A DNA stretch of 64,000 bases from Bispira polyomma (taxonomy: Eukaryota): contig OZ287752.1 of assembly GCA_965649765.1 (NCBI GenBank), forward strand, positions 58,404,001 to 58,468,000. Reading direction: 5' to 3'. The notes beneath the pieces are model-generated. The model saw only the letters and a list, made by a program, of their open reading frames with translations. It was not told where the DNA came from and did not search any database. Positions 1 through 63,856 of this stretch are shown piece after piece. Position numbers and translations under genes: made by a program. The number at the start of each line of letters is the position of its first letter. Position 1 is the first letter of the stretch.

Positions 1-255
1 GTGGAGTCTGGACTAAGGCTTTGCTGGCCATTCCCATGGGCGAAGTTGTGCTGGTCTTGGTTTATTATGGTTTTCTTCACAGCTGTAACACCTTCTAACC
101 ATACCTTTAAGCTCACCATCAATGCCAGACCACCAGACATACATTCTGGCTAGGCTGGATACACCCAGGCTTAATGCAGTGCCTGCAGAACAGCAGCATG
201 TCCCTGCAGTGGCACTATAACGCGGTTCCCTATACCAGGCAGCCATCTTGAACAC
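1..255 (-). mobile_element. Ty3/Gypsy-type LTR retrotransposon integrase remnant (zinc-binding region)
   Basis: Minus-strand ORF contains SLARMYVWWSGIDGELKGMVRRCYSC...LRPWEWPAKP, then TAG followed by SRLH, where the family normally has W-S-R-L-H. Degenerate. Confidence 0.85.
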
Positions 256-50200: not shown

Positions 50201-53200
50201 AAAGACTAACACCCGTTAAGGGCCAAGTACCCATTTATACACCTGGGTAGAGAGGGACAACTTTGTGTAAAGCACCTTGTCCAAGGGTACAATCTCCAGG
50301 CCGCAGGCGAGGATCGAACCCTGGCTCTTAAGATCCAAAGTCCGACACACTAACCATTAGGCCACAGAGACCACAAAAGGTAAGAATACACTAATAAAAA
50401 ACACGGGGGATTTCTAGATTAAACTCAAGTGAAGACTATGTATGTAACTCCTGTAAAAGGAAATAACCTCTATTTGTGACTATTCATTTTGATAGAGCTT
50501 TTAGTACTGAATTTAAATGTGCAGTCAGATTTGATGTATATTCCCTATTCTATTTCTAGAGGTTGGCAGAGCTTAGATTTGATCTGAATTGAGCCAGAGG
50601 TATTTGGAGAAAACGTCTATAGGAATGGATTGTATTTTGCATTTTTAATGTGGCTCATTGATGTTAAGCATCTTCTAAGGCACAACAATAGAATCAATTA
50701 ATCAATTGAGAAGTCAAAAAACAACAACATAGCCACAATAATAACGAATAATGTGGTGGTTTACAGGGAGGGAATTAAGTGGGTTAAGTATTTTTTGCGA
50801 GAAGGCTCTTAGTAAAGCTACACCACACTAAATAAATAGATTATCTGGGGTGTGGTTCACAAAATATCTTAAGGGGCTATGAACGTAACCGCATAAACTG
50901 ATCACTGATAACTTCCACTTACACCTACGAAAATACAGCATTTTTCTGATGTTGAGACCTTAAAACTGGTTCCACTTATATCTAAATTCCACTTACACTG
51001 GTTCTACTTATACAGAGTCTACTGTATCTTCGTATGTGTTGGAGCAATACTCGTATTGTGTCATGATAGAAAGGGCTCTCTGTGAGAATTGTTTACAAAT
51101 ATGACATTCCCATATAGATTTTAAATTGTGTGACGTCACAATATAAGAATCATTATAGGACTGTTTTAATCACTTTGCAACAAAATAGTAAAGTTTTAAA
51201 TGGTATCTGCATATAAAAATGATTTATACGGTCACTAAAGAACCATTTTATGGATGCTGTATTAAGTATATGTACCAAAATGAAAATTTGTAAATGTAGG
51301 ATAATATTTGGGCAGCGCATTTATGGGTTTACATTCATAGCCTCTCAAGCTTAAGCTCAGACTTAAGTTCTCAGAATTTGTAAAGGGTTTTGACCAAATC
51401 AAACTTAAGTCTTGTCTGAAGTTGAAGACCTCTAGCAGGGTGATTTAAGACTAATTGTTGTGGTCTATCCCATATTTCTAAGATATTAAACATGATTCCT
51501 ACCAATTTATGTTTATAATTCTATATTGTATAGTACTACTACAGTATATTAAACCCAAAATTTAATCAAAATATTTGAAAATATATATTTAAGCTGAACT
51601 TTGTCTATGACGTGATTTCTTGCACCAAAATAGTCCTAAGTAGATAGCCCTGCTATTAATATATTGAACTATATGGGATTGTGACGTAATAAAAATGTGT
51701 GCTTTATGCACAATTACAGTTAGAAAAAGTATTTTTAAAATCTTATTTTAACTGGAATTCAAAATGGTACAGTTAAAGTCATTTTTTCCTAAATTTTTTC
51801 ATGGCAGTTTACGTGAATCAACTGATGACAAATCTTAGCCAATAAATCTGTCTGGTCCTAGTAGAATAGAGGCACTATATTTTTCTACCGCTCCCCTCCA
51901 AAAAAAACTCAAACACAAAAACAAACGATTAAAATCGGCATTGTGGTTTCATTTTGATGCCAAAAGAATTGGAATTGTTCAGCACCTCGAGATGTGTGAT
52001 CAATAAGGTGACATAAAAAGGGTGCATATATATGTACCGGTATGTGAATCTTTTCCAAATGTAACAATTCATAGCAGGCAAGATCCAGACCAAATCGCTT
52101 GACGTAAAGGTAGAGCATTGAAGATAGGTCAATGTCTTAATTAACTTCAGTGGATTGCTGGCTCCTATATGAAATATAGGAAAAAGCATGAAAAATGCTT
52201 CTGTTTCTGCAGACTGAGGATGTTCTAACTTGTAATTATCGAAGATTTGGAACCACGTTGGACTAATAACTGAGGATCTACTCTTACACCCAAAAAGTAA
52301 TAAGAAGTCGATAGTTGACCATAGTATTGGTTTGTATTTATGTCCATATTTTATAATCAAAGTTCCGTATAGGAGATTGTTTCCTTTTCTATGGTACTGA
52401 GGATCTACTCTTACACCCAAAAAGTAATAAGAAGTCGATAGTTGACCATAGTATTGGTTTGTATTTATGTCCATATTTTATAATCAAAGTTCCGTATAGG
52501 AGATTGTTTCCTTTTCTATGGTACCGGACTTCCTATTTCATTCTTGTAGTGAAGTTGTTATGTATATAGGATGTGCTGTAGGAGGATGTAAAATGGGTGC
52601 TAGGGTATGAATATTAAGCAAATTTACACTGTACAAGCTTGTGTTTATTGTATCTCTGGATCTCATACCTTGAAATATGTATACTGAGTTTCTGTGTTAT
52701 TATCTTAAATAATAATACAGTATAAACCCCTTTTGTTCAAACGTCTATTATCCATCCTCCCAGAATTATGTTTTCGTATTATTTTATGTATAAAAATGCT
52801 TCTCCTATGTCTACTATTCAAACCAGCTGTTGCTCTCCGAATATGTTTACATAATAGAGGTTCTACTGCATACACAGTAACACAGGTGGTCCAAAATTGC
52901 AACTACAGTTGAAACCCTTTACCCTTAACTTAAGTGACCACGATAAATGCTTTTACTTAAGCAGGAAGTCCACTTAACATGGTGTGTTTTAAAAGAAAAT
53001 GCCTAACTTAAAAATACTACGTTTCAATGTACACAAACAAATATAGAGAGCAACAAATAAATAACCAAAAATAATGTACAAAGTTTTTAATCTATTAAAT
53101 AAAGATTTTATTATGAACACTTTTTACATTGTGTCAGTACATGTGCAGTTGAAAGTGTGGAAGTATGGATATAATGTAGCACTGTAGCTTGTGAGTAGTC

Positions 53201-56200
53201 GTTTCCTGAGAGTTTTTGGTTTCCTCTGCCGTAGTCAGTTCTATTATTTCCTAGTATGTCGGGACTTAGGTATTATAATATTTAATACATCAATAAAGCA
53301 AATGAGGTTCTTTTTTCTTTTAAACGTTTTTTTGCAATTTGAATGGAAGCTACTACTTATATAAATATACTGGATATTTGAAAGAATGGCACATATAGTA
53401 GTAGAAATTCAAGTTTTTTAAACAAGTTTACACTTTGGGTAAGCTCCCAAAAAATTGTTCTTTAAACGACAACTTTTTAAACCAAACTCTCAGAATTATC
53501 TATCAGATACCTACATAATATCTGTCATCATTTCTTTGCTTAGGGACACTGTTTTTTTTGACAAAAACCTTTTTCTAGTTTAAATTAGTGTAAGTTTGAA
53601 CAATTATTGTTCTATTGCACTCCTTAAAGTCCAGGGGCTGTGCACAAAAGGGATCAACGAAAAATCAGCTAAAGTAGAGCCAAAACTCAGGATAAGTTAA
53701 GCCAAAAATTAGCTGAGCCAAAAATCAGCTCAAATTTTTGGATCGAATCAAATTTGGTATTCACTAAAAAGTTAAGCTGATTTTTCGCTCATCTTTTGGC
53801 TTAACTTTGATCTATCCATTTAGGTGGATCAAGATTTAGATCAAAGTTAGGAGCTTTGTAATATACAAACTAAGAATGCTTGCATAAAATAAATCCTTGG
53901 TAAACTATATCTGATTCTTTAACTTTACGTATGTCATTTAAGAGTAACTATTTACAGTTCTATGTTGGTTTAAATTGTTGTGAAAAGAGGCTATGTTTTG
54001 TGTATTTTTTGCAAGGATCAAAAGTGGATTGAGGTTCAGTTTTTCCATTGAATCAAAACATATTTAAAATATTCTTTTGCTTACAATAATCAACCTGATG
54101 CACAAAAATATACTTGTAATGGAAATATGTTCATATTACAGCTGTTTAAGATGTATAAAAAACTTAAACCTGTTTTTTTGTGGTTAATAATTATATAAAT
54201 TTTAGCTAGCTGATCCTTGCTTTGTGAGTACTGATTTGATCTAAAGATCAGCTGAGCCTTTTTTTTTAGCTGATATTCATCCTGAGCTGATTTTTCGCTC
54301 AGCTTGGTTTATCTTTGTGAATACGGGCTAAGATTGAAATGGTTAGTCAATTTTGTTCGCCAGTTAACCGTTTGAAGTCACCACCGAGTAACCGGTTAAC
54401 CTTGAACTGTATGTATACAGACTGATTCATATTACCACAACGTAAACTATCTACTGTGGGTTGTGTAAACACCTCAGTATAAACTATAATAAGGGGCTGT
54501 GAGATTTATAGCAGTTAACTGTTCTGACAGACCGGTTAACATTCTCGCAACCTATTACTTAAGTACTACGGTTAACCCTTTCAACCTTAATACTGGCGCT
54601 GTAATAAAAATTGGAAGTCTATAGTTGGCCATAGTATAGGTTTGTAGTTCGTGTTTTCTAACATTATTCACCTCATTTTATGAGTTTCCTTGCTATGGTA
54701 TCGGACTTCCACGCTTAATCTGTGTAATGCCTGTATATATACTGTGTCATAGTGTCGTTTTCAAGATTATGGGTGTAACTTTTTGAATATTTAACAGCAA
54801 TTTTATCTTTGGGTATTGTTATGTTTGGTATGTATTTGTTAATGTAATTATGATTCACCCCAAGAAAATGGTGTGTTGGTTAATAGAATTACTATTTTCT
54901 GAATATTCAATAAGTAGGGTCCCGTATCATGTTTTCGACGCACTGTATTGATTTTGTACTATTTTATGATAATGTATATTTTTATTAAGTACACCGAAAA
55001 CCCTAACGAACTTTATACTAATAATTCATTTTAAATAATTGAAGGATTTATAAAGCGCCAAAGTATAGAGTGCCGGTATTACATAATAAAATCGATAAGA
55101 AAATGCGGAAAATAAATGAAAATTCTTGAGTAACTTCTGTTTTCAAGTGACGCTGTGACCTTTTAGAGCTCCCACTTTAGAATTAATGTATTCAGAATAC
55201 TTGTAGCTTTACTATAACGCTGGAAAGTGGATGACTACGACAAAAAGGAAGTCTATAGTTGACCATAGTGCACTTTGTGATAAGTTACTTTATAAATATA
55301 TATTTTCCTCTAGTGTGAAGATTTCTTTACTATGGTGCCGGACATCCCAGTAGTTGCAGGAGTAATTCAGGAATTTATATACATTATGTGAAGGTGTTTT
55401 TGCATTATGGGTAACAGAGTTTGAATGTTGTGGCATGAATACCTTCTTTTGAATGTGGCAAAACAAGTGTTATCCAATTCTGATCATCCTGAAATTTTTA
55501 TATTATTATTTCATCCCATATCCCATTTTATGTCTTTTATATCAACTGTTTATTATTCAGGGAAACTGTCATCATCATTGTTCAAAATTGTTGAGTGCAG
55601 AAAAGATGCACATTTGATTTATGAAAATGTACTATCAGTAGCAGGATTTTTCCTGGTCAAAAATAGATCTATGTACCACATGGCTGCTGAGAACAGGGCT
55701 AATATTCCCAAGGTGTAATTCTTAAATTTTTATCTCAATTAATTTGATCAGTTGAAAATATTGTCTCAAAGAATTCGTTTGGCTGAGACTAAGAAAATTC
55801 TAAGAATTGCTTTCTAAGAATATGTTTGCCAATACGGCCCCAGATGTCTGTGTGGAAAGAAAAGAATTATTGTGAGAGCCTGTTGTCGAGGTACATTTTG
55901 TTTGTACCCTGTTTGTTCCTCCAGCACCATTCAGCTGAAAAAAGTGACAGTCAGGCTTAGGATAAAATAATATACATGTGAATCAAATTTGTTAAAGTAA
56001 ACGATACAGTTGGACCCCTTTAACTCGAACCTCAAGAGATCAGGAGAAATACCTCCACATAAGCAGGATTTCCACTTGACAAGGTCAATTTTAAAAGAGG
56101 AGGCTTTTGTGGGACTATCATATTTTTTGAATTTAGCCAAGTTTTAGGCTTAAATCTAGCACAAAAGTATTCTAGATTTAAGACTAAGACGTGGCTAAGT

Positions 56201-59200
56201 CCGTTAGTGAATACCGCCCCTGGACTTTAAAAGGAAGTCTATAATTGACCATAGTATAGGGATGTGTATGATTTTATATTTAAAATTTGTTTGTAATCAC
56301 TAAGTGACTATGTCTTTGTTATGGTACCGGACTTCCAAGTATTGGTTTGTTAAATTGATGAATTTATACTAGTAACCATCACACAGTTCATTTTTATGGT
56401 TTAGAAAGTTTGAATATTTATGTCAGTAATGCTTGTGCACTGACATTTTTTGTGTGACAAATTTAGTAAGTTTGTACAGGTAGTGTTTCAATTACATGTA
56501 GTAAGATTGACTTTACTTGTAACTGCCAGCTGTATTGGCAGGATTAATGTTCTAAAGTATTCTTATTAACTGTGTAATTGTATCCACCGATTAGGTGGAT
56601 ACTTTGGGTTTTTTACGCCGTCGCAGAGAGATTTTTGCCGTTAACACTCTCAGCGGAAAACTAGACCAGGTAGCTTCACCAAATTTGCAGGATATCTTAA
56701 TTGGGAGGTAAGCTTCTCTGCGACTGAAATAAACCTCATTCTGAAAAACAAAATGGCCGCCATCAGCATTTCTTTGAAAATGTTCCACCTTTTTCTACTG
56801 GCTGGTTCTCGTAACTAGAAGGTTAAATCTCTTCAAAGGTGATATGTATAACATATATATGTCCTCAACAAAAATGCAGACATTTGACCTTGAGGCTCTT
56901 CATTCAAGGTCATCCACGGAGTGCCAAAGTACCCCACATAGTGAACTTTAAAAGTGCCTATATCTCCCTTATTATTGGTCCAAGAAGTTTGGCATGTGAA
57001 GCCTACCTATAGAAAATCATGGGATGGGAATCTTCTGATGTGGTCAGGTTTGACCTTGGGCCCCTCATTCAAGGTCAAACAATGTATCCAAACTTGAAAG
57101 TGCTTATAACTCGCTTATTATTGGTCCTAGAGGTTTGCATTATGAAACCAACTTATAGGTAATCATGGGCTGGGAATCTTCTGATGTGGTCAGATTTTAC
57201 CTTGGGCCCCTCCATCAAGGTCAAATGGCAATAGCTAAACTTAAAAGTGACTATATCTCCCTTATTATTGGTCCTAGAAGTTTGGCATGTGAAGCCTACC
57301 TATAGGAAATCATGGGCTGGGAATCTTCTGATGTGGTCAGCTTTGACCTTGGGCCCCTCATTCAAGGTCAAACAAGGTATCCAAACTTGAAAGTGCTTAT
57401 AACTCGCTTATTATTGGTCCTAGAGGTTTGCATTATGAAACCAACTTATAGGTAATCATGGGCTGAGAATCTTCTGATGGGGTCAGATTTAACCTTGGGC
57501 CCCTCCTTCAAGGTCAGACGAGGGTAGCCATAGCTTGGCTGCTTCCTACCTAGGGTGCTCTGTCTTTCTGGTGGATACAAATATGCATTGGTTTTCTGAT
57601 GTGCTGGAGTCTAGTTAAGTATGTCTTCACCTATTAACACTTTTCTTTTTTTGGTGTATATTTTGTACTTTATTTTTGTACTCCTATTTCTTGTGGATTT
57701 TTGTGTTAGTCAAGGGTTAATACATAGTTCATATTGGGTGTGATTAAGTCAGTCAAATATTTATGTTGCAAGGAAAACTGAACACAAAACACAAGGTCAA
57801 CAAATTGACTATACCTTATTTTAGACCAAGTTTATTGTTGTCGTTTAGTGGCATTTCGTAGCCACTGACGACAGAGTGGTTACCAATCACAAAACTTATG
57901 AGGCACTCTATATACATCAATGTTACACTTAACTGAGTTGACAAATATTTTCAAACATATATGAAACACTGATTTAAACAGAAATACTGGGAGGTATTTG
58001 CTATATGTGCCTACAGATCATAAATATAAGTTAAAAACATTTAAGAAATAATAACACGTACTCATACTGTAACATAATCATATTTTTATGTATTTTAAAA
58101 ATTTCCGAAAGATATTCACCAAAGTTATAATTTTCTTTATATTTGCCAAAGTTATAATTTCTTTATCCATATAGTTATTTCATTTTTCAGATATTGACAT
58201 GTTATCCCATGTATGATATTTTTGCTTCATAATATTTTCTAAAGTTTTCTGGTTTGCAAATATAAATACGGCAATTAAAGACCAAATAAATTTAATTTTC
58301 AACATCGAAACTTGAATTTGAATTTGGATATTTAACATCCACTCTAGTACCTTTTAGTAGGTTATATTGGGACGGGTAGTTGGAAACACTGGAGGAAACA
58401 CTCAAGGTTCTGCAGAGAAACCAGCGGCCCACAGTAAGGAACTACCACCTTTCCCACATAGGCATCGACGGGATTCGAACTCATGCCGCCCAGAGGTGAG
58501 AGACCAGTGATTGTGAAGCGCAATGCTTGCTAACCACTAGGCCACTGCGGCCAACATCGAGACAACAAAGCTTACATATAACTTATAATATGACACCATT
58601 ACAAATCTATTCATACAATAGTACACTTTGTTCAATACAAAATGGTGGTAATGTTTTAAATATTAAAGAGATAAAATTTTGAAATACTTCTACACGGCAG
58701 ATGTTTGCAATTAGTTTTGATGTGAAAAGTGGGTTTGATTTCACAAACTTCGAAAAATAAAATCAATAAACTCAAATCTGTTCAAGTAAACGATAGAGTT
58801 GAACCCCTTCAACTCGAACCTCAAGGGAATGAAAGGATTAGGAGAAACACCTCTACTCATAAGCTGGATTTCCACTTACCAGGGTATATTTTAAAAGAGA
58901 AGGATTTTGTGGGACAACAGTGTTTTCTCCGCATAAAAGAGAATCAACTTAACAGTGTTCTACTTATAATTAAGGGTTCTGACTTTTAATTTATTTAAAT
59001 TATCTAATTTTTGTGCATCAGTTAATTCTGAAAACAGTTTACATACAATTTGAACTCCTTTAAGCAGAATCTCAAGGGACAAGGTCAAATATCTCTACTC
59101 AAGCAGGATTTTCACTTAACAGGGTAGATTTTAAAGAGAAAGCTTTTCTTGGACTACTATGTTTTTTGCACATAAAAGATAAATCGACTTAACAGACTTC

Positions 59201-62200
59201 TACTTAAAGGGGGTCAGTTTAATCTGAAAATAGTTTACTACAGTTTGGACTCCTTTAAGTAGAATCTCATGGGACAAGGTGAAATATCTACTTAAGCATG
59301 ATTTCCACTTAACAGGGTAGATTTCAACACTTTTGTAGGACTACAATTTTATAATTAAAAGGAAGTCTATGATTGACCATAGCATAGGGATGTGTATATA
59401 TTTATGTTTAACATTAGTTTCGTAATCACTAAGTGAATATGTCTTTGTTATGGTACCGGACTTCCAATTTTATATTTGTTAACTTGATGAATTTATACTA
59501 GTAACTGTCATGCAGTTCATTTTTATGGTTTAGAAAGTTTGAATATATAGGTCAGTAATGCTTATGCAGTTATTTTTTGTGTGACAAATTTATTTATCAA
59601 TTAGTAAGATTGACTTTTCCTTTAACTCCCAGCTATATTGGGAGAATAAATTTCCTAAAATATGCTTATTAACTGTATGAAAAAATGAATGAATAAATTA
59701 ATAAATCAAATAAACTGCCTGCAATAAGTAATAAGGATCCAATGATATTAAATTTAACTAATACTCTTATTTTTTGTAAGATTTTTTTTGATAGTCAAGG
59801 GTTAATATATAGTTGATATTGGGTATGATTAAGTTTGTTGAATATTTGTGTTGCAACAACAACTGAACATAAAACACAAGGTCAAAAAATTGACCATACT
59901 TTATGTTAGACCAAGGTTATTGTTCATATTTTGTGGTATTTTGTAGGCACTGGCGATAGAGTGGTTACCATTCACAAAACCTCAAAAAAAATCTAACATG
60001 GCTATTTTTCTATCTTCGGTATAATAAAAGTAAACATACATATATTTTCTATATAACTTTCTTTCGAAATGTTAATATTAGTGTCTATTTTATCATGAGT
60101 ATAAGTACTTACAGGTGGGGTAATATTAATTGTAATATTGTGCATGGTTATTGTGTATTCATTATTACAACCACAAACTATATGGTAAAGTGATAATTTT
60201 TTGCACGTTCTTGTACTATGACAGATTTGTGAAGTTTTGCAAACTCTGGTGGCTACAAAAACTACAAAACTGCGTCTAACCTCATTCATAAAACTTCTTA
60301 ATTTTTACTTTTAAAAATAACCCACTCGACGACAGTTAAATCAACATTATGATTACTTATTTTGGAATTAGTTTCTTTTCTCTTCAAAATGTTATTCTAT
60401 AATTTTACAATGCTGAAATTTATATGCTGTATATGTTAATAAATATGTGTATGGAAAACTAATTTTCATACACACAATATGTACAAGAGAAAGGCTATGA
60501 TTGGCCATAATGCAGAGATGAGGGTATTTTATGTTTAAACATTATTCTTTAATCACTAAGTGAGCTTTCCTTATTATGGTACCAGACTTCCAGTTAATGT
60601 TTGCTCTGCTATGTGTATTTATACTAGTACATACTGCACAGCTCATGGTTATGGTTTGTAGGGTTTGAATATTTATAGTACAATCACACTAGTTTGTCAA
60701 TACTTGTACTCGTTGTTTTAATACAAAACTGCTTTCTACTAAATGGTTACAAAACATGGACTTCACAGACCATAGGAAGTATTCACAAAAGGGCTAAGTC
60801 TAGACATTGACTTAGATCTAGTGTACTTTTGTGCTACATTTAGGACAATGTCTAGATTTACCCTTTTGTCAATACTGCCCCAGATGTTCTCTTGAAATGT
60901 TTAACTAATTTTTCTTCTAGTGTAGATTTTTTAGTGGGGATCCTATCTTCTGATTTGTTTAGTTTTGGAATCCGAACTAAACTTTCAGCCTCAAATAGTG
61001 TTAATTGTATAACAAAGCCCTTCAAATGCATTTCTCCAAAAAAAGTTTCTGTGAGAAGAACAGAAAAAGGGAAGTCAATAATTGACCATAGTGCACTGGT
61101 TTGTTAGCTTATTTATATTTCATTATTTCCGTTTGTGGAGATTTCTTTACTATGGTACCGGACTTCCATTATAGTGAGTAAAGTTGCACTAAATTATGTA
61201 CCATAAGAAGAACAATTTCCTACATTATGGTTGAAGTGGTTTGAATATAAGAAGAGGTATATATTTTTTCTTTTTTAAACCAGTTTAAAAATTTCCTGTA
61301 TTTGGGATGTTGGGTATTTAAAAATAGAATTTAAAATATTTGCAATAGATATATAAACACCTATACTAGGATATACCAGTATGTGTTTTTTTTTACCAGA
61401 AATCCTTGAGAAATTACTATATTCTAGAAATACACTTGTCTTCGATATAATATAAGACCAGACTCACCAGAGTAGGTTTCTACTTTTGATGATTTTTATT
61501 GTAATCTATCCGACACATCTTAAGGTTCAAATATTCCCCGAGTAGATAATACAGTCCAACCCCTTTAAGTAAAATTATCTGTTAAGTAGAAGTTATTTTA
61601 AGATGCCATTTAGTATATTTGTAATTGATGAAATTTACCCCGTTAAATGTAATAAATTTTCTGTGTTTCACAAGAATCAAAAGAAGTCTATAGTTGACCA
61701 TAACATGGGGTGTTTTTGTATTTCAAACATTTCTTTCTGTCACTTTGTGAGCTTGTCTTTGTTATGGTACCGGACTTCCATCTATTGTGATACCACTACA
61801 AATCCATTTATATAATAGTACACTTTGTTTAATGCAAAATGGTGGCAATGGTTTGAATAATTAAAGAGGTAAAAATTTTAATACTTCTGTGTGACAGATG
61901 TTCATGGAAAAGTATTTGCAAAGTATTAATTTTAAAAGTGGGTTTGATTTTACAAAGTATTCATATGAAAAGTGAAAGAAATTAACAAACGGTCTTTAAG
62001 TCTTAACTTAGTCTTCAGTTTAACTAATTAACTGATTAAGATAGACTGCATTTATACAAGTAAAATAACAATGGAAAAATTGAGTATGTGACAAGCATCA
62101 GTATATATCTAATCAGTTAGTAACATTTATTGCTTGCTGTAGTAACATTCATTGCTTGCTATTTGTCTAGTGTATACTGGTATTTGTCGTGACAGACATT

Positions 62201-63856
62201 CCAATGTAACAAGATTTGAAATTTTGTCGACCGAATGTTTATTGGCAAGCAGTCAACACTCCAAAAATATTATTTTATTTTCCTTCAGTTCCTCGTTATA
62301 GGAAATTGTTAGTACAGCAGATTTCCCCGTTTTAAAAGTTATATTCGAGGTAGTTATTAATTGCCAGCAGTAGTGTGTGGTGTATTTTTTAGTGACTTTA
62401 TCTTTGTGTATTAACCTATTGCCGAAAAATCTCATTTCAGTTTCCGTCAGTTTTTCTCCCAGTCGCGAAAGTGTTAATAGAAAACAGTGGGTGAGCTGTT
62501 AAGAAAGCATTTCCTGTGTATTCGTGTTTGTGGCTATGGTACAGTAAAACCTCTATTTTACGGACATCTTGGAAGAGTGAGAATTTGTTTGGATAATATA
62601 GAAGGTCCGTAAAATATAAGTAGCATTTTAGTAGAAAGCAATAGTGAATATTTTGATAATAGATGGTCGGATAATAGAGGTTCTACTGTACTTATGTTTT
62701 AGGGGGTTATGTTACCAGTCACTGGCTCTCTAGGTCAGTGTTGTTTACTAATGACTATTCATCTTGTTTTGTCAGGTATGATTGGCTATGGCATGGCAAA
62801 GGCTGCAGTACACCAGCTGGTAAAAAGTCTGGCTGCTGAAAATTCTGGTTTACCAAAAGATGCATTTGTGGGTGCAATATTACCGTAAGTATTCGTCAGA
62901 TGGTAGAATGTCAATGTGCAGGAATGAAAGTTTAACTCAGTATGTCAATAACATTTTGCAACCCAGGAAAGAATATCTCAGGTCGAGGGACCTAACTAAC
63001 TACCTACATTAGAACCTTTCTTATACAAAGTCCTGTTATCCATTTATTTAATTTGTTGAACTCAATTTCCCTCTCCCAACTTAAATAAATAAGTTTCAAT
63101 AAGGGGAATGCCAGTTACTGGGGCTTGTTGGCTGTACTTGAGCAGTCAGGAAAACGTTAATTAGCACTTTGAATACCAGATAAAGATATATGAATAAATT
63201 TAAACAAAATATAATACAAGTATCATCTTTGTGAAATTTTGAAATATGTGATTGCCAAAAGGCGTGTCCACACTTTTTTTACCAATGACTACAATTGGGC
63301 AAGATGTCTACAAGTAGTGACTCGGATGACCACTTAAAATGCGATCGTCTGTCACTGGGTCCTATCCCCAGTGGCAGGCTAGAGATCCTTGGGGACGTTG
63401 ATAAACAGTCATCATCAAGCCTCTCTCTTCAGCTAGGGGAATGACAGTAACTGATGCAGTTGACTGTTAAGAGTTAGAGAAGGTCTATGCAAATACCAGA
63501 TGACGGTAGATAATTCACCGAGTATAAATATGAATACAAATTGCTAGGCAAGCGCCAGTTTATCAGATACAGTCAAACCACTTTTAAGTAGAATTCTGAT
63601 AAGTGGAATTACCTGTGAAGTACAAGTTATTTTTAGGTCCCATTGCTTTATTTATAATTAAATTTTACCCTGTGAAGTAGAAGTTCTGTTAAGTAGAACA
63701 AATTTTGATGGTCCCCTCAGATTCGACTTAACAAGGTTGCACTGTATTTTGTTTTTGTGACTATTTGTACAGGGTGACATTGGACACTCCTAATAACAGG
63801 AAGTGGATGCCCGAGGCTGACCACTCGTCCTGGACACCATTACAGGAAGTGGCAGA
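44200..63856 (+). CDS. QDPR: Dihydropteridine reductase (quinoid), exons 1-6, 3'-partial
   Basis: [17 protein letters not shown] / WVASID / [14 protein letters not shown] / [11 protein letters not shown] / [15 protein letters not shown] (YxxxK) / [20 protein letters not shown]; all splice phases are compatible. Confidence 0.97.
45047..45453 (+). mobile_element. MULE (ZSWIM3-like) transposase remnant in QDPR intron 1
   Basis: [22 protein letters not shown]...[24 protein letters not shown]...[16 protein letters not shown]; CxxH motif, three in-frame stops. Confidence 0.8.
47551..47643 (+). CDS. QDPR: QDPR exon 2
   Basis: [31 protein letters not shown]. Confidence 0.95.
48008..48180. mobile_element. 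MITE (CAGTAGAA family) 13 nt upstream of QDPR exon 3
   Basis: tacagtagaaacttgattatc...ggataatagaagttctactgta. Confidence 0.85.
48194..48290 (+). CDS. QDPR: QDPR exon 3
   Basis: [32 protein letters not shown]. Confidence 0.95.
49652..49875 (+). mobile_element. Older related SINE copy ending just upstream of the QDPR exon 4 acceptor
   Basis: ggccaagtagttataag...aatcactggcctctcacctctggggatcgaatccc. Confidence 0.65.
49891..50031 (+). CDS. QDPR: QDPR exon 4
   Basis: [46 protein letters not shown]. Confidence 0.96.
50110..50372 (-). mobile_element. tRNA-headed SINE with CORE-like central domain (family 2)
   Basis: Minus strand: tggcctaatggttag...ggttcgatcc...cccttggacaaggtgcttta...cccaggtgtataaatgggtac. 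Confidence 0.75.
52292..52397 (-). pseudogene. 5'-truncated, promoterless duplicate of small RNA copy A
   Basis: Product of an exact 127-bp tandem duplication (52271-52397 = 52398-52524); lacks the 5' GGAAGTCCG. Confidence 0.75.
52419..52533 (-). ncRNA. Y-RNA/sbRNA-like Pol III small RNA, copy A
   Basis: GGAAGTCCGGTACCATAG...CTATGGTCAACTATCGACTTCT-TATTAC-TTTTT; upstream elements at conserved spacing. Confidence 0.72.
52558..52612 (-). promoter_or_regulatory. Type-3 Pol III promoter (PSE-like + TATA) of copy A
   Basis: ATTCATA at -79..-73, CCCATTT at -64..-58, TATATACATAA at about -35..-25. Confidence 0.65.
53634..54328. mobile_element. Harbinger-like MITE (GGG..TATTCACAAA TIR family); related pieces at about 55790-55842, 56135-56222 and 60775-60881
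   Basis: ggggctgtgcacaaaag ... ctttgtgaatacgggc with internal inverted aaaaatcagct repeats. Confidence 0.6.
54329..54590. mobile_element. hAT-like MITE with repeated CGGTTAACC
   Basis: Ends taagattgaaa / tttcaacctta; several ccggttaac subterminal motifs. Confidence 0.5.
54606..54710 (-). ncRNA. Y-RNA/sbRNA-like Pol III small RNA, copy B
   Basis: GGAAGTCCGATACCATAGC...CTATGGCCAACTATAGACTTCC-AA-TTTTT. Confidence 0.72.
54734..54788 (-). promoter_or_regulatory. Type-3 Pol III promoter of copy B
   Basis: ATTCAAA at -78..-72, CCCATAA at -63..-57, TATATATA at about -31..-24. Confidence 0.7.
55242..55347 (-). ncRNA. Y-RNA/sbRNA-like Pol III small RNA, copy C
   Basis: GGATGTCCGGCACCATAGT...ACTATGGTCAACTATAGACTTCC-TTTTT. 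Confidence 0.7.
55374..55426 (-). promoter_or_regulatory. Type-3 Pol III promoter of copy C
   Basis: ATTCAAA at -79..-73, CCCATAA at -64..-58, TATAAA at -32..-27. Confidence 0.75.
56229..56336 (-). ncRNA. Y-RNA/sbRNA-like Pol III small RNA, copy D
   Basis: GGAAGTCCGGTACCATAAC...CTATGGTCAATTATAGACTTCC-TTTT; has one internal T4 run. Confidence 0.68.
56363..56415 (-). promoter_or_regulatory. Type-3 Pol III promoter of copy D
   Basis: ATTCAAA at -79..-73, ACCATAA at -64..-58, TATAAA at -32..-27. Confidence 0.75.
56578..57616 (+). mobile_element. HINE-like element with four alternating ~146-bp units
   Basis: Subterminal inverted repeats tgtatccacc/ggtggataca, 3' hairpin, CTAGTT end; absent from the paralogous segment upstream of copy E. 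Confidence 0.75.
58312..58551 (-). mobile_element. tRNA-derived SINE (family 1) with TSD
   Basis: Reverse complement of the same family; TSD caacatcga(a/g)ac. Confidence 0.9.
58610..58661 (-). promoter_or_regulatory. Orphan, decayed copy of the copy-H promoter with no RNA gene downstream
   Basis: About 58590-58750 aligns with about 61787-61953, with mutated TATA (TATGAA) and ATTTAAA. Confidence 0.6.
59357..59465 (-). ncRNA. Y-RNA/sbRNA-like Pol III small RNA, copy E (paralog of D)
   Basis: GGAAGTCCGGTACCATAAC...GCTATGGTCAATCATAGACTTCC-TTTT. Confidence 0.72.
59492..59544 (-). promoter_or_regulatory. Type-3 Pol III promoter of copy E
   Basis: ATTCAAA at -79..-73, ACCATAA at -64..-58, TATAAA at -32..-27. 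Confidence 0.75.
60485..60591 (-). ncRNA. Y-RNA/sbRNA-like copy F (degenerate, possible pseudogene)
   Basis: GGAAGTCTGGTACCATAAT...ATTATGGCCAATCATAGCCTTTC; bulged C changed to T, lower stem disrupted, no adjacent T4; promoter intact. Confidence 0.55.
60618..60670 (-). promoter_or_regulatory. Type-3 Pol III promoter of copy F
   Basis: ATTCAAA at -79..-73, ACCATAA at -64..-58, TATAAA at -32..-27. Confidence 0.72.
61064..61167 (-). ncRNA. Y-RNA/sbRNA-like Pol III small RNA, copy G
   Basis: GGAAGTCCGGTACCATAGT...ACTATGGTCAATTATTGACTTCC-C-TTTTT; carries the Y-RNA-type GUCCG/UUGAC pair. Confidence 0.74.
61194..61246 (-). promoter_or_regulatory. Type-3 Pol III promoter of copy G
   Basis: ATTCAAA at -79..-73, ACCATAA at -64..-58, TACATAA at -33..-27. 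Confidence 0.7.
61679..61779 (-). ncRNA. Y-RNA/sbRNA-like Pol III small RNA, copy H
   Basis: GGAAGTCCGGTACCATAAC...GTTATGGTCAACTATAGACTTC-TTTT; compensatory AAC/GTT in the upper stem. Confidence 0.72.
61807..61858 (-). promoter_or_regulatory. Type-3 Pol III promoter of copy H
   Basis: ATTCAAA at -79..-73, ACCATTT at -64..-58, TATAAA at -33..-28. Confidence 0.72.
62776..62884 (+). CDS. QDPR: QDPR exon 5
   Basis: [37 protein letters not shown]. Confidence 0.96.
63568..63746. mobile_element. Second TA-flanked MITE family (TACAGT...TTAAGTAGAA)
   Basis: tacagtcaaaccacttttaagtagaat...attcgacttaacaaggttgcactgta; related copies at about 23999-24172, 52905, 56006, 58795, 59045, 59238 and 61550. Confidence 0.75.
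63773..63856 (+). CDS. QDPR: QDPR exon 6
   Basis: [27 protein letters not shown]. Confidence 0.96.

Follow-up and report, generated by a model that had tools for sequence, protein, structure and literature searches.

The 64 kb of Bispira polyomma DNA analysed here (the window; assembly GCA_965649765.1, contig OZ287752.1, positions 58,404,001 to 58,468,000 of the forward strand) carries on its minus strand eight genes for stem-ended RNAs of about 100 nt, designated copies A to H. In window coordinates, the predicted +1 G lies at 52533 in copy A, 54710 in B, 55347 in C, 56336 in D, 59465 in E, 60591 in F, 61167 in G and 61779 in H, and all of the features described below for these copies are likewise on the minus strand.

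A T run begins 0-2 nt past the 3' stem in six of the copies. It is a T5 run in B (gene at 54606..54710; run at +101..105), C (55242..55347; +102..106) and G (61064..61167; +100..104), and a T4 run in D (56229..56336), E (59357..59465, where it abuts the stem) and H (61679..61779; +98..101). In copy A (52419..52533) the stem ends at +104 and a T5 run is found 7 nt further on, at +111..115. Copy D contains a second T4 run inside the RNA, at +52, which could bring the transcript to an early end. Copy F (60489..60591) has a weakened lower stem and no T4 run before +134, and is possibly decaying. A covariance-model match (65.6 bits) at 52299..52406 also revealed an incomplete tandem duplicate derived from the 3' part of copy A; a pattern search of the window gave no match to the PSE pattern upstream of this duplicate.

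The RNAs resemble Y RNAs and nematode stem-bulge RNAs in their length of about 100 nt, their paired 5' and 3' ends and a bulged C past the lower helix, and their genes resemble those of Y and stem-bulge RNAs in being clustered and multi-copy, with a putative external promoter and a T-run terminator. They are referred to here as Y-like. With Rfam, on the other hand, no Y_RNA (RF00019) hit reached the gathering score anywhere in the window, and neither Y_RNA nor any other family gave a match at E up to 10 between 52000 and 62500. Because of this, and because the internal loop (C opposite AUA) presumably differs from the Ro-binding helix of Y RNA, Y RNA identity is put forward as a candidate only.

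A composite element upstream of all eight genes

Each gene is preceded by the same bipartite motif. ATTCA[AT]A occupies -79..-73 and [AC]CCAT(AA/TT), the core, -64..-58 in seven of the eight copies, while in copy B the two blocks are found at -78..-72 and -63..-57, a 1-nt shift; this is exactly the register given in the original prediction. The site reads ATTCAAA-N8-ACCATAA in copies D (56394..56415), E (59523..59544), F (60649..60670) and G (61225..61246), ATTCAAA-N8-CCCATAA in B (54767..54788) and C (55405..55426), ATTCATA-N8-CCCATTT in A (52591..52612) and ATTCAAA-N8-ACCATTT in H (61837..61858), spanning -79..-58 in every copy except B (-78..-57). When both strands of the window were searched with ATTCAWA-N8-MCCATWW, eight matches were returned, all of them the eight gene sites, compared with a shuffle expectation of 0.02 matches and a maximum of 1 in 100 shuffles.

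Over the 28 pairs that can be formed from the eight copies, the 20 motif columns have a mean identity of 0.82, compared with 0.33 for the six columns of the inner spacer and 0.35 for the 78 other upstream columns, the last value being close to the chance identity of 0.30 calculated from base composition. The claim that spacer sequence is unrelated between copies while the spacing is kept was thus borne out, with the exception of the recent duplicates D, E and F, which are the outliers outside the motif (D/E 0.83, D/F 0.53, E/F 0.47). A sliding-window comparison of seven copies, from which copy E was omitted as a near-duplicate of D, ranked the 26-column window spanning core-18 to core+7 highest of 175, with an identity of 0.70, the runner-up non-overlapping window reaching 0.36, and no conserved block was detected between core-136 and core-19.

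A covariance model built on the RNA only recovered six further family members dispersed on four contigs. All six carry ATTCA[AT]A-N8/9-[AC]CCAT.., with the two blocks at -78..-82 and -63..-66. These observations bear on whether the motif might be a duplication leftover or a mobile-element fragment without promoter function, a reading suggested by the paralogy of the eight genes and by the presence of a perfect motif 22-mer in a repeat dispersed through other parts of the genome. It is extremely improbable, given that the flanks have decayed nearly to chance around a motif that is still well conserved, that the element stands in register both at the six dispersed paralogues and at the unrelated U6atac, MRP, RNase P and tRNA-Sec genes considered below, and that the flanks of the dispersed repeat were not found around the window copies.

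TATA boxes and internal boxes

A TATA[AT]A hexamer starts between -35 and -29 in seven of the eight copies. TATAAA is located at -32..-27 in copies D (56363..56368), E (59492..59497), F (60618..60623) and C, and at -33..-28 in H, the boxes of C (55374..55381; -34..-27) and H (61807..61814; -35..-28) reading TATATAAA in full. Copy A has the TATA-like TATATA at 52563..52568 (-35..-30) and copy B has TATATATA at 54734..54741 (-31..-24). No such hexamer was found between -40 and -20 in copy G, which has the A/T-rich ATAATTTA instead. A TATA-like box at about -32, as originally predicted, is therefore present in all copies but G. The complete predicted pattern, ATTCAAA-N8-(A/C)CCATAA-N25-TATAAA-N26-GG, is exact in only four of the eight, because the sequence and position of the TATA box differ among the copies.

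Inside seven of the eight RNAs there is no A or B box within two mismatches of the consensus. Copy B has a B-like string with two mismatches at +3..+13, in the 5' stem, and is devoid of an A box. The prediction that no internal B box would be visible holds with this one qualification. Activity need not extend to all copies, given that G is without a TATA hexamer, F without a nearby T4 run and D has an internal one.

The element at other Pol III genes of the genome

U6, 7SK, U6atac, RNase MRP and RNase P genes were located by Rfam alone, and their upstream DNA was then inspected. The proposal that the motif represents the PSE of the species would have been undermined by U6 and other snRNA genes without it; the core was in fact found to start at -62..-64 in U6, 7SK, U6atac, MRP and tRNA-Sec. 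ACCATAA occupies -64..-58 in the two identical U6 array copies inspected (of 45), in the C12 copy of U6 and in 7SK, and a third dispersed U6 copy reads AGCATAA from -64 on. In both U6atac genes the core start lies at -64, and in two of the three MRP genes at -63 and -62. In three of the four RNase P genes it starts at -68, -68 and -67 as counted from the Rfam model start, which leaves RNase P 3-4 bp out of register if that start is taken as +1. The tRNA-Sec genes, which were recovered by the motif scan (L088, 80.8 bits; L111, 78.2 bits), begin 63-64 bp past the core start, at the predicted +1. Overall, core starts fall at -62..-64 for the 11 known genes of the Pol III class other than RNase P, and at -62..-66 for the 15 Y-like genes. 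The TATA start follows the core start by 29-34 bp in those U6, 7SK, U6atac, MRP and RNase P genes that have the core, and in U6 and 7SK TATATAAG/A begins at -33/-32. One MRP, one RNase P and one U6 copy without the element provide natural negative controls; all of them score lower against the Rfam models, and a run of A residues comes after the U6 copy.

The promoter appears to be of the ordinary external Pol III kind, since it is also found upstream of U6atac, RNase P, MRP and tRNA-Sec genes. Each of the eight genes very probably has its own gene-external (type 3) Pol III promoter of the snRNA kind. Judged by its sequence, this is the PSE plus TATA type-3 Pol III promoter of the lineage, with predicted start sites; a known kind of promoter is thereby spelled out for a little-studied lineage. 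The three sequencing runs found to contain this DNA, kept as contigs, belong to a single study, and none is registered as RNA.

The use of the motif as a finder of other Pol III RNAs, suggested in the original prediction, proved worthwhile, as the scan returned tRNA-Sec, MRP, RNase P and U6atac genes together with several unannotated small-RNA clusters. The motif with TATA gave 125 matches in the genome compared with 3 for a reversed-pattern control, an excess inflated by one unexplained family on contig C7 that makes up around one third of the matches listed. Without TATA there were 1375 matches compared with 52 in the control, and this excess is inflated by an interspersed repeat with an identical 22-mer (47 of the 100 matches listed, by hand count).

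The upstream half-site is more variable in its distribution than the core. The U6atac, MRP, RNase P and tRNA-Sec genes have ATTCAAAC-N7 ahead of the core and with it the full bipartite motif, but ATTCAAAC is absent upstream of U6 and 7SK, where TGACTAAAC adjoins the core instead. The predicted extra half-site is therefore real and its description as an extended PSE fits, although its lack in U6 and 7SK indicates a common module and not an obligatory one, nor one indispensable for Pol III transcription. ATTCAAAC may be bound by something other than SNAPc. An alternative is accordingly that ACCATAA is the SNAPc site and ATTCAAAC a separate site for another activator, a very proximal enhancer outside the SNAPc footprint. 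Core and ATTCAAAC can be uncoupled, since ATTCAAAC is missing and the core is kept in U6, 7SK and two dispersed U2 genes, where a different conserved block, TGACTA(A/G)AC, adjoins the core. Moreover, if ACCATAA is taken to correspond to the first bases of the fly PSEA, its distance of 31-34 bp to TATA fits the 33 bp from PSEA start to TATA in the fly (PMC1761439), which would place ATTCAAAC outside the canonical PSE. The gap between the blocks, exactly 8 bp in genes of both polymerase classes, argues the other way, as does their joint shift by 8-9 bp relative to +1, expected of one rigid complex; in addition, the element of 22-25 bp is no longer than the fly PSEA of about 21 bp (PMC1761439). 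A separate site is on balance doubtful, while being a possibility to be taken seriously.

Under the composite-site reading, which we favour, the PSE would be a 25-bp block, WTATTCAAAC-(N2)CTAR(N2)-AMCCATAAT, extending from -81 to -57. What all snRNA-type genes of the genome have in common is its ACCATAA core, on which SNAPc presumably docks. ATTCAAAC, always 8 bp 5' of the core, would be an added upstream module of the same site. The TATA box, at about -32 and 31-34 bp past the core start, would be the binding site of TBP together with a TFIIIB of the Brf2 type. Pol III, the predicted polymerase, would initiate at or near the G located some 26 bp downstream of TATA, produce the stem-ended RNA of about 100 nt and stop at the T run after the 3' stem.

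Spacing, polymerase class and comparison with known promoters

U1, U2, U4 and U5 RNAs are Pol II products in other animals. The same element is present upstream of these genes in B. polyomma, 8-9 bp nearer to +1 than in the Pol III-class genes, with the core starting at -54..-56 in all ten promoter types examined (U1, three types of U2, U4 and five types of U5). A TATA-like box starts 23-27 bp past the core start in nine of the ten types, about 7 bp nearer to the core. In approximate terms, the distances from the core start to TATA and to +1 are 32 and 64 bp in the Pol III class, compared with 25 and 55 bp in the Pol II class. The Y-like genes group with the Pol III class on both distances.

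The element is shared by known Pol III genes but is not specific to them, and since the composite PSE occurs in both classes the motif alone does not name the polymerase. It might be argued that the eight genes are themselves snRNA-type genes transcribed by Pol II, like U1-U5, which share the composite PSE and even a TATA-like box. This is very unlikely, as a core start at -63/-64 followed by TATA 29-34 bp later matches U6, 7SK, U6atac, MRP and tRNA-Sec and not U1-U5, T runs lie past the 3' stem in seven of the eight copies, and neither an Sm-site-like sequence nor a 3' box was noted in the eight genes. A run of at least four T residues within 12 nt of the 3' end was found in 11 of 12 Pol III-class genes vs two of nine Pol II-class genes.

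What marks polymerase class seems to be spacing, not whether TATA is present, because U1, U2, U4 and U5 use the element closer to the start and most of them have a TATA-like box. Whether spacing, and not TATA, also sets the choice of polymerase, with the same grammar marking several families of Pol III small RNAs not described before, is a more tentative matter, to which we would give a little less than an even chance. If true, it would mean that an animal uses a spacing code like that of plants but in the reverse direction, and the undescribed families would comprise at least four clusters of stem-ended RNAs of about 100 nt and the contig C7 family, with at least 30 copies.

The vertebrate type-3 set comprises U6, 7SK, H1/RPPH1, MRP, Y RNA and tRNA-Sec genes, with a DSE, a SNAPc-bound PSE and a TATA box bound by TBP-Brf2-Bdp1. 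The promoter described here is similarly gene-external and is used by U6, 7SK, U6atac, RNase P, MRP, tRNA-Sec and Y-like RNA genes; as in vertebrates, SNAPc-type elements are common to Pol III and Pol II snRNA genes. The core CACCATAA presumably agrees with the PSE consensus of vertebrates in its 5' half. Unlike in vertebrates, there is a second conserved block, ATTCAAAC, upstream of the core and nothing conserved 3' of it, where the vertebrate PSE continues. According to PMC11696126, the vertebrate type-3 promoter is gene-external with a PSE between -40 and -70 and TATA near -25/-30, and in humans the presence or absence of TATA decides the polymerase, at a PSE-TATA spacing of 15-18 nt. In contrast to the human case, nine of the ten Pol II-class promoter types examined here have a TATA-like hexamer, and the two classes are about 7 bp apart in spacing.

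The insect PSEA, bound by DmSNAPc, is paired with PSEB in Pol II genes or with TATA in Pol III genes; here too a long element (about 21-25 bp) serves both polymerase classes, and ATTCAAAC is presumably similar to the conserved 5' half of PSEA in the fly. In PMC1761439, snRNA promoter sequences are said to differ strongly among lineages, the fly TATA box lies at PSEA positions 34-41 (Pol III) and PSEB at 30-37 (Pol II), and polymerase choice in the fly depends on PSEA positions 19 and 20. B. polyomma is like the fly in having the downstream element farther from the PSE in Pol III genes. It differs in a class shift of 7-9 bp instead of 4 bp and in a TATA box at about position 47-50 from the first base of ATTCAAAC instead of 34, and a class-specific base such as those at PSEA positions 19 and 20 was not seen.

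Plant snRNA promoters, according to PMC9845283, have a USE (RTCCCACATCG) and TATA in both classes, the spacing deciding between Pol II and Pol III. Both classes in B. polyomma likewise consist of an upstream element and a TATA-like box at differing distances. The USE sequence is unrelated to the PSE found here, and the direction is the reverse of that in plants, the PSE of the Pol III-class genes being about 7 bp farther from TATA.

Eight window genes and their upstream motif

A gene of roughly 100 nt is present eight times (A–H) on the minus strand of the window, between 52.4 and 61.9 kb, with the predicted first G (+1) at 52533 (A), 54710 (B), 55347 (C), 56336 (D), 59465 (E), 60591 (F), 61167 (G) and 61779 (H). 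The RNA begins with GGAAGTCCGGTACCATA and finishes with CTATGGTCAACTATAGACTTCC, followed by a T run. Based on an alignment of A–H with one paralogue from contig C4 of the same genome, it folds into a lower stem of 7 bp, a bulged C facing AUA, an upper stem of 11 bp with compensatory changes in four pairs, and a freely variable loop, and it looks like a Y or stem-bulge RNA. Rfam gave no match in the whole window at gathering score and no family on A–H at E up to 10 across 52000–62500, where the weak matches to miRNA and snoRNA models all fall on hairpin repeats. Function may be impaired in three copies: G lacks a TATA box, F has no terminator close by, and D contains an internal T4.

The original prediction placed ATTCA(A/T)A at −79 to −73 and the core (A/C)CCAT(AA/TT) at −64 to −58 in seven copies, both one base closer in copy B, and these positions were confirmed. 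The TATA box claimed at about −32 to −27 was exact in C, D, E and F (TATAAA), shifted in H (TATAAA, −33 to −28), A (TATATA, −35 to −30) and B (TATATATA, −31 to −24), and absent from G, which has no TATA hexamer. Searched on both strands of the 64-kb window, the spaced motif pattern matched eight times, always at A–H, against 0.02 in shuffles.

That the spacers are unrelated while the spacing is kept was also borne out. Mean pairwise identity among the upstream regions is 0.82 in the motif columns, compared with 0.33 for the inner spacer and 0.35 for the other 78 columns, where 0.30 is expected from base composition; the motif has been kept and its surroundings have drifted to noise. Recent duplication is still apparent only in the pairs D/E, D/F and E/F. 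When seven copies were compared in sliding windows, E being excluded because it nearly duplicates D, the block that runs from 18 bp 5′ of the core to 7 bp into or past it ranked first of 175 windows (identity 0.70), the next best non-overlapping window reaching 0.36. The motif itself, its register and the constraint on it are direct observations. A relic of duplication, or a fragment of a mobile element, was rejected as an explanation given the identity of 0.82 in the motif against 0.35 in the flanks.

Several other features were noted around these genes. A tandem duplication of about 129 bp (52271–52406) covers the 3′ part of copy A but includes neither its 5′ end nor its promoter. At 53693–53808 and 56121–56213, long and nearly perfect hairpins (MITE-like inverted repeats) match several miRNA models weakly, far under gathering scores, and a stretch at about 58350–58550 with the tRNA-like B-box string GGGATTCGAACTC may be a tRNA-derived SINE.

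The element at known small-RNA genes

The 1.04-Gb genome (75 contigs) was searched with Rfam models, and upstream DNA was taken by coordinates. Matches were found for U6 (48, of which 45 form a tandem array with a 702-bp period), 7SK (1), RNase MRP (3), U6atac (2), RNase P (4), U1 (42), U2 (48), U5 (48) and U4 (42). The upstream regions examined comprised five U6, two U1, five U2, eight U5 and three U4 genes, together with all copies of the small families.

As expected of a proximal sequence element (PSE) of this species, the core is present at U6, 7SK, U6atac, MRP and RNase P genes. At U6, ACCATAA occupies exactly −64 to −58 with a TATA box at −32/−30 in two array copies, whose upstream regions are identical, and in a copy on contig C12; AGCATAA stands at this position in another dispersed copy, and the 7SK upstream region is laid out as in U6. 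The full bipartite motif was found at −79 and −64 in both U6atac genes, at −78/−63 and −77/−62 in two of the three MRP genes, and at −83/−68 or −82/−67 from the Rfam model start in three of the four RNase P genes, the last offset suggesting that the true RNase P start lies 3–4 nt upstream of the model start. The proposed ATTCAAA extension of the PSE is present at U6atac, MRP and RNase P genes; U6 and 7SK lack this conserved upstream half-site (ATTCAAAC). In these, and in two dispersed U2 genes, TGACTA(A/G)AC directly abuts the core in its place, the U6-type upstream region being a TGACTAAAC-core block.

The element is missing from one MRP, one RNase P and one U6 copy, the last with an A run behind it. 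Each of the three gets a lower score from its Rfam model, and they look like dead copies. The MRP copy (L036, C3:90453801–90454048, minus strand) is a natural promoter deletion: its flanks match a sister copy, the PSE stretch is gone, and it scores 100.9 compared with 142.5 bits against the MRP model. As a separate observation, RNase P and RNase MRP genes stand divergently, head to head, at two places (L035, L037, L040 and L041; C3:98916066–98917039 and C1:88336643–88337492), 428 and 315 bp apart, each gene with its own PSE and TATA box.

The U1, U2, U4 and U5 genes carry the same element, including ATTCAAA, ATTCAGA or ATTCAAC with the 8-bp gap to the core unchanged. Here the core starts at −54 to −56 in all ten promoter types examined, compared with −62 to −64 in U6, 7SK, U6atac, MRP and tRNA-Sec. 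A TATA-like hexamer occurs in nine of the ten Pol II-class types, so that TATA presence does not separate the classes in this genome; it lies 23–27 bp after the core start, as against 29–34 bp in the Pol III class. The two classes therefore differ by about 7 bp in core-to-TATA spacing and by 8–9 bp in core-to-start distance. A run of T4 or longer within 12 nt of the 3′ end agrees with this split, being found in 11 of 12 Pol III-class genes and two of nine Pol II-class genes, both of them U2 genes in which the run straddles the Rfam 3′ end. The sharing of the element with known genes, like the separation of the classes, is read directly from the DNA.

By core-to-start and by core-to-TATA distance alike, A–H fall into the Pol III class, and their assignment as Pol II snRNA-type genes was rejected on both distances. 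That they are driven by an ordinary type-3 Pol III promoter is well supported by this layout.

Proposed promoter architecture and comparison with other systems

The ACCATAA core, in its extended form CTAR-NN-AMCCATAAT, is shared by all snRNA-type promoters of the genome and is hence the best candidate for the site on which SNAPc would dock. The absence of ATTCAAAC from U6 and 7SK could mean that it serves a separate factor, which is the less likely but still quite plausible reading. A single composite site of ATTCAAAC and core is favoured, since the half-site keeps its distance of 8 bp upstream of the core and moves with it between registers. TBP, together with a Brf2-type TFIIIB, would be bound at the TATA box that lies about 32 bp after the core start; transcription by Pol III would begin some 26 bp beyond this box, at the G, and end in the T run. 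We infer the bound proteins, the polymerase and the start site from this arrangement.

The core presumably fits the vertebrate PSE consensus, and we take ATTCAAAC to resemble the 5′ half of the fly PSEA. In humans, the PSE lies between −40 and −70 with a PSE–TATA spacing of 15–18 nt, and the TATA box is described as the only determinant of polymerase choice (PMC11696126); the Pol II class of Bispira polyomma differs in carrying TATA-like boxes. An ACCATAA string in the human U6-2 scaffold of the same source was discounted as support, as it appears to lie 5′ of the PSE proper (PMC11696126). For the fly, the source describes a PSEA of about 21 bp with PSEB at positions 30–37 and TATA at 34–41, a PSE centre about 50–55 bp upstream, and PSEA positions 19 and 20 as deciding the polymerase (PMC1761439). 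The fly distance from PSEA start to TATA (33 bp) is similar to the 31–34 bp from core to TATA in the Pol III genes of this study. The consensus, the extra upstream block and the size of the class shift differ from human, fly and plant.

A search of the freely accessible literature turned up neither a PSE nor a U6 promoter described for an annelid or a mollusc; there are papers that deal with upstream elements of 7SK and snRNA genes in invertebrates. The consensus, register, TATA position and terminator of an external Pol III promoter are now given for this lineage, and intact window units, or U6 and U6atac units, are candidate drivers for guide RNAs or short hairpins in Bispira polyomma. It is a matter of continuing debate how SNAPc commits a promoter to either Pol II or Pol III. 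A clean register difference of 8–9 bp, with TATA-like boxes in both classes, offers a natural system for spacing-swap work, and the spacing difference is a feature deserving experiment.

Searches with the RNA model and with the motif

A covariance model trained on the RNA portions alone, with no promoter sequence, found 16 places in the genome: the eight window genes, the partial duplicate of copy A that has no promoter, the C4 gene used in the model, and six new dispersed family genes on contigs C2, C4, C5 and C8. In each of the six new genes both half-sites are in register: five genes carry them at −78 to −80 and −63 to −65, the sixth at −82/−66 with a 9-bp gap. The stems of these genes show further compensatory changes. 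This in-register promoter is evidence independent of the motif search. In a metagenome scan for the core with the RNA 5′ end, the RNA model matched none of 62 loci at E up to 1, and these are taken as chance matches.

Without a TATA requirement, the motif matched 1375 times in the genome, compared with 52 for the reversed pattern. By hand count, 47 of the 100 matches listed are one identical 22-mer, ATTCAAACCCTAGCAACCATAA, a perfect PSE match inside an interspersed repeat of more than 440 bp (L068–L075, L080 and L085 on contig C1, e.g. C1:1780065–1780086) whose TATA-like stretch lies out of register, 44 bp from the core start. With about half of the listed matches due to this 22-mer, the excess is mostly a repeat. 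When a TATA box was required 21–28 bp after the core, 125 matches were obtained, compared with three for the reversed-pattern control, and the 100 listed represent 93 distinct sites. Among those listed are five of the eight window copies (A and H were missed by the strict pattern because their cores deviate, and G because it has no TATA box), MRP, RNase P, U6atac and four tRNA-Sec loci. Three of the last were confirmed by Rfam (80.8, 78.2 and 36.1 bits) and L109, the fourth, was identified by visual inspection only. The claim that the motif can find other Pol III RNAs is upheld by the recovery of tRNA-Sec, RNase P, MRP and U6atac without use of their sequences. Moreover, transcription of tRNA-Sec begins at the mature 5′ end of the tRNA, and in the two strong-scoring loci the tRNA starts 63–64 bp after the core start, so that the predicted start is calibrated independently.

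The motif scan thus serves as a gene finder, and it also points to several small-RNA families outside Rfam. Of 51 motif-found loci, Rfam recognised only tRNA-Sec (three loci), the other downstream RNAs matching no family at E up to 0.1–1. Other families of about 100 nt have the same promoter, paired 5′ and 3′ ends and a T-run terminator, likewise with no Rfam match at E up to 0.1–1. They include clusters of stem-ended units at C1:14848930–14852730 (L084, five copies) and C2:78.67 Mb (L091–L093), three similar units at dispersed sites (L086, L097 and L098), a pair (L083 and L087) and a single unit (L089) whose ends read like the canonical Y RNA stem, the closest of these families. A crude detector of terminal stems and T runs, applied to 60 motif loci, was too noisy for unit counts and was left out.

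Another family, with no Rfam match, has at least 32 copies among the matches listed, at 55.2–68.8 Mb of contig C7 (e.g. L116, L124, L126 and L127). Its near-identical PSE and TATA units are tens of kb apart, with the TATA box 33 bp from the start of the core, which is the Pol III register; a C-rich stretch then follows, without T4 for at least 200 nt. Finally, a pair of units on the minus strand of contig C8 (L118 and L119, at 35407327 and 35408387) has the PSE with a TATA-like box 26–28 bp after the core start, which is Pol II-class spacing, and a stretch resembling AUUUCUGG, a possible Sm site; the two may represent an snRNA outside Rfam's recognition.
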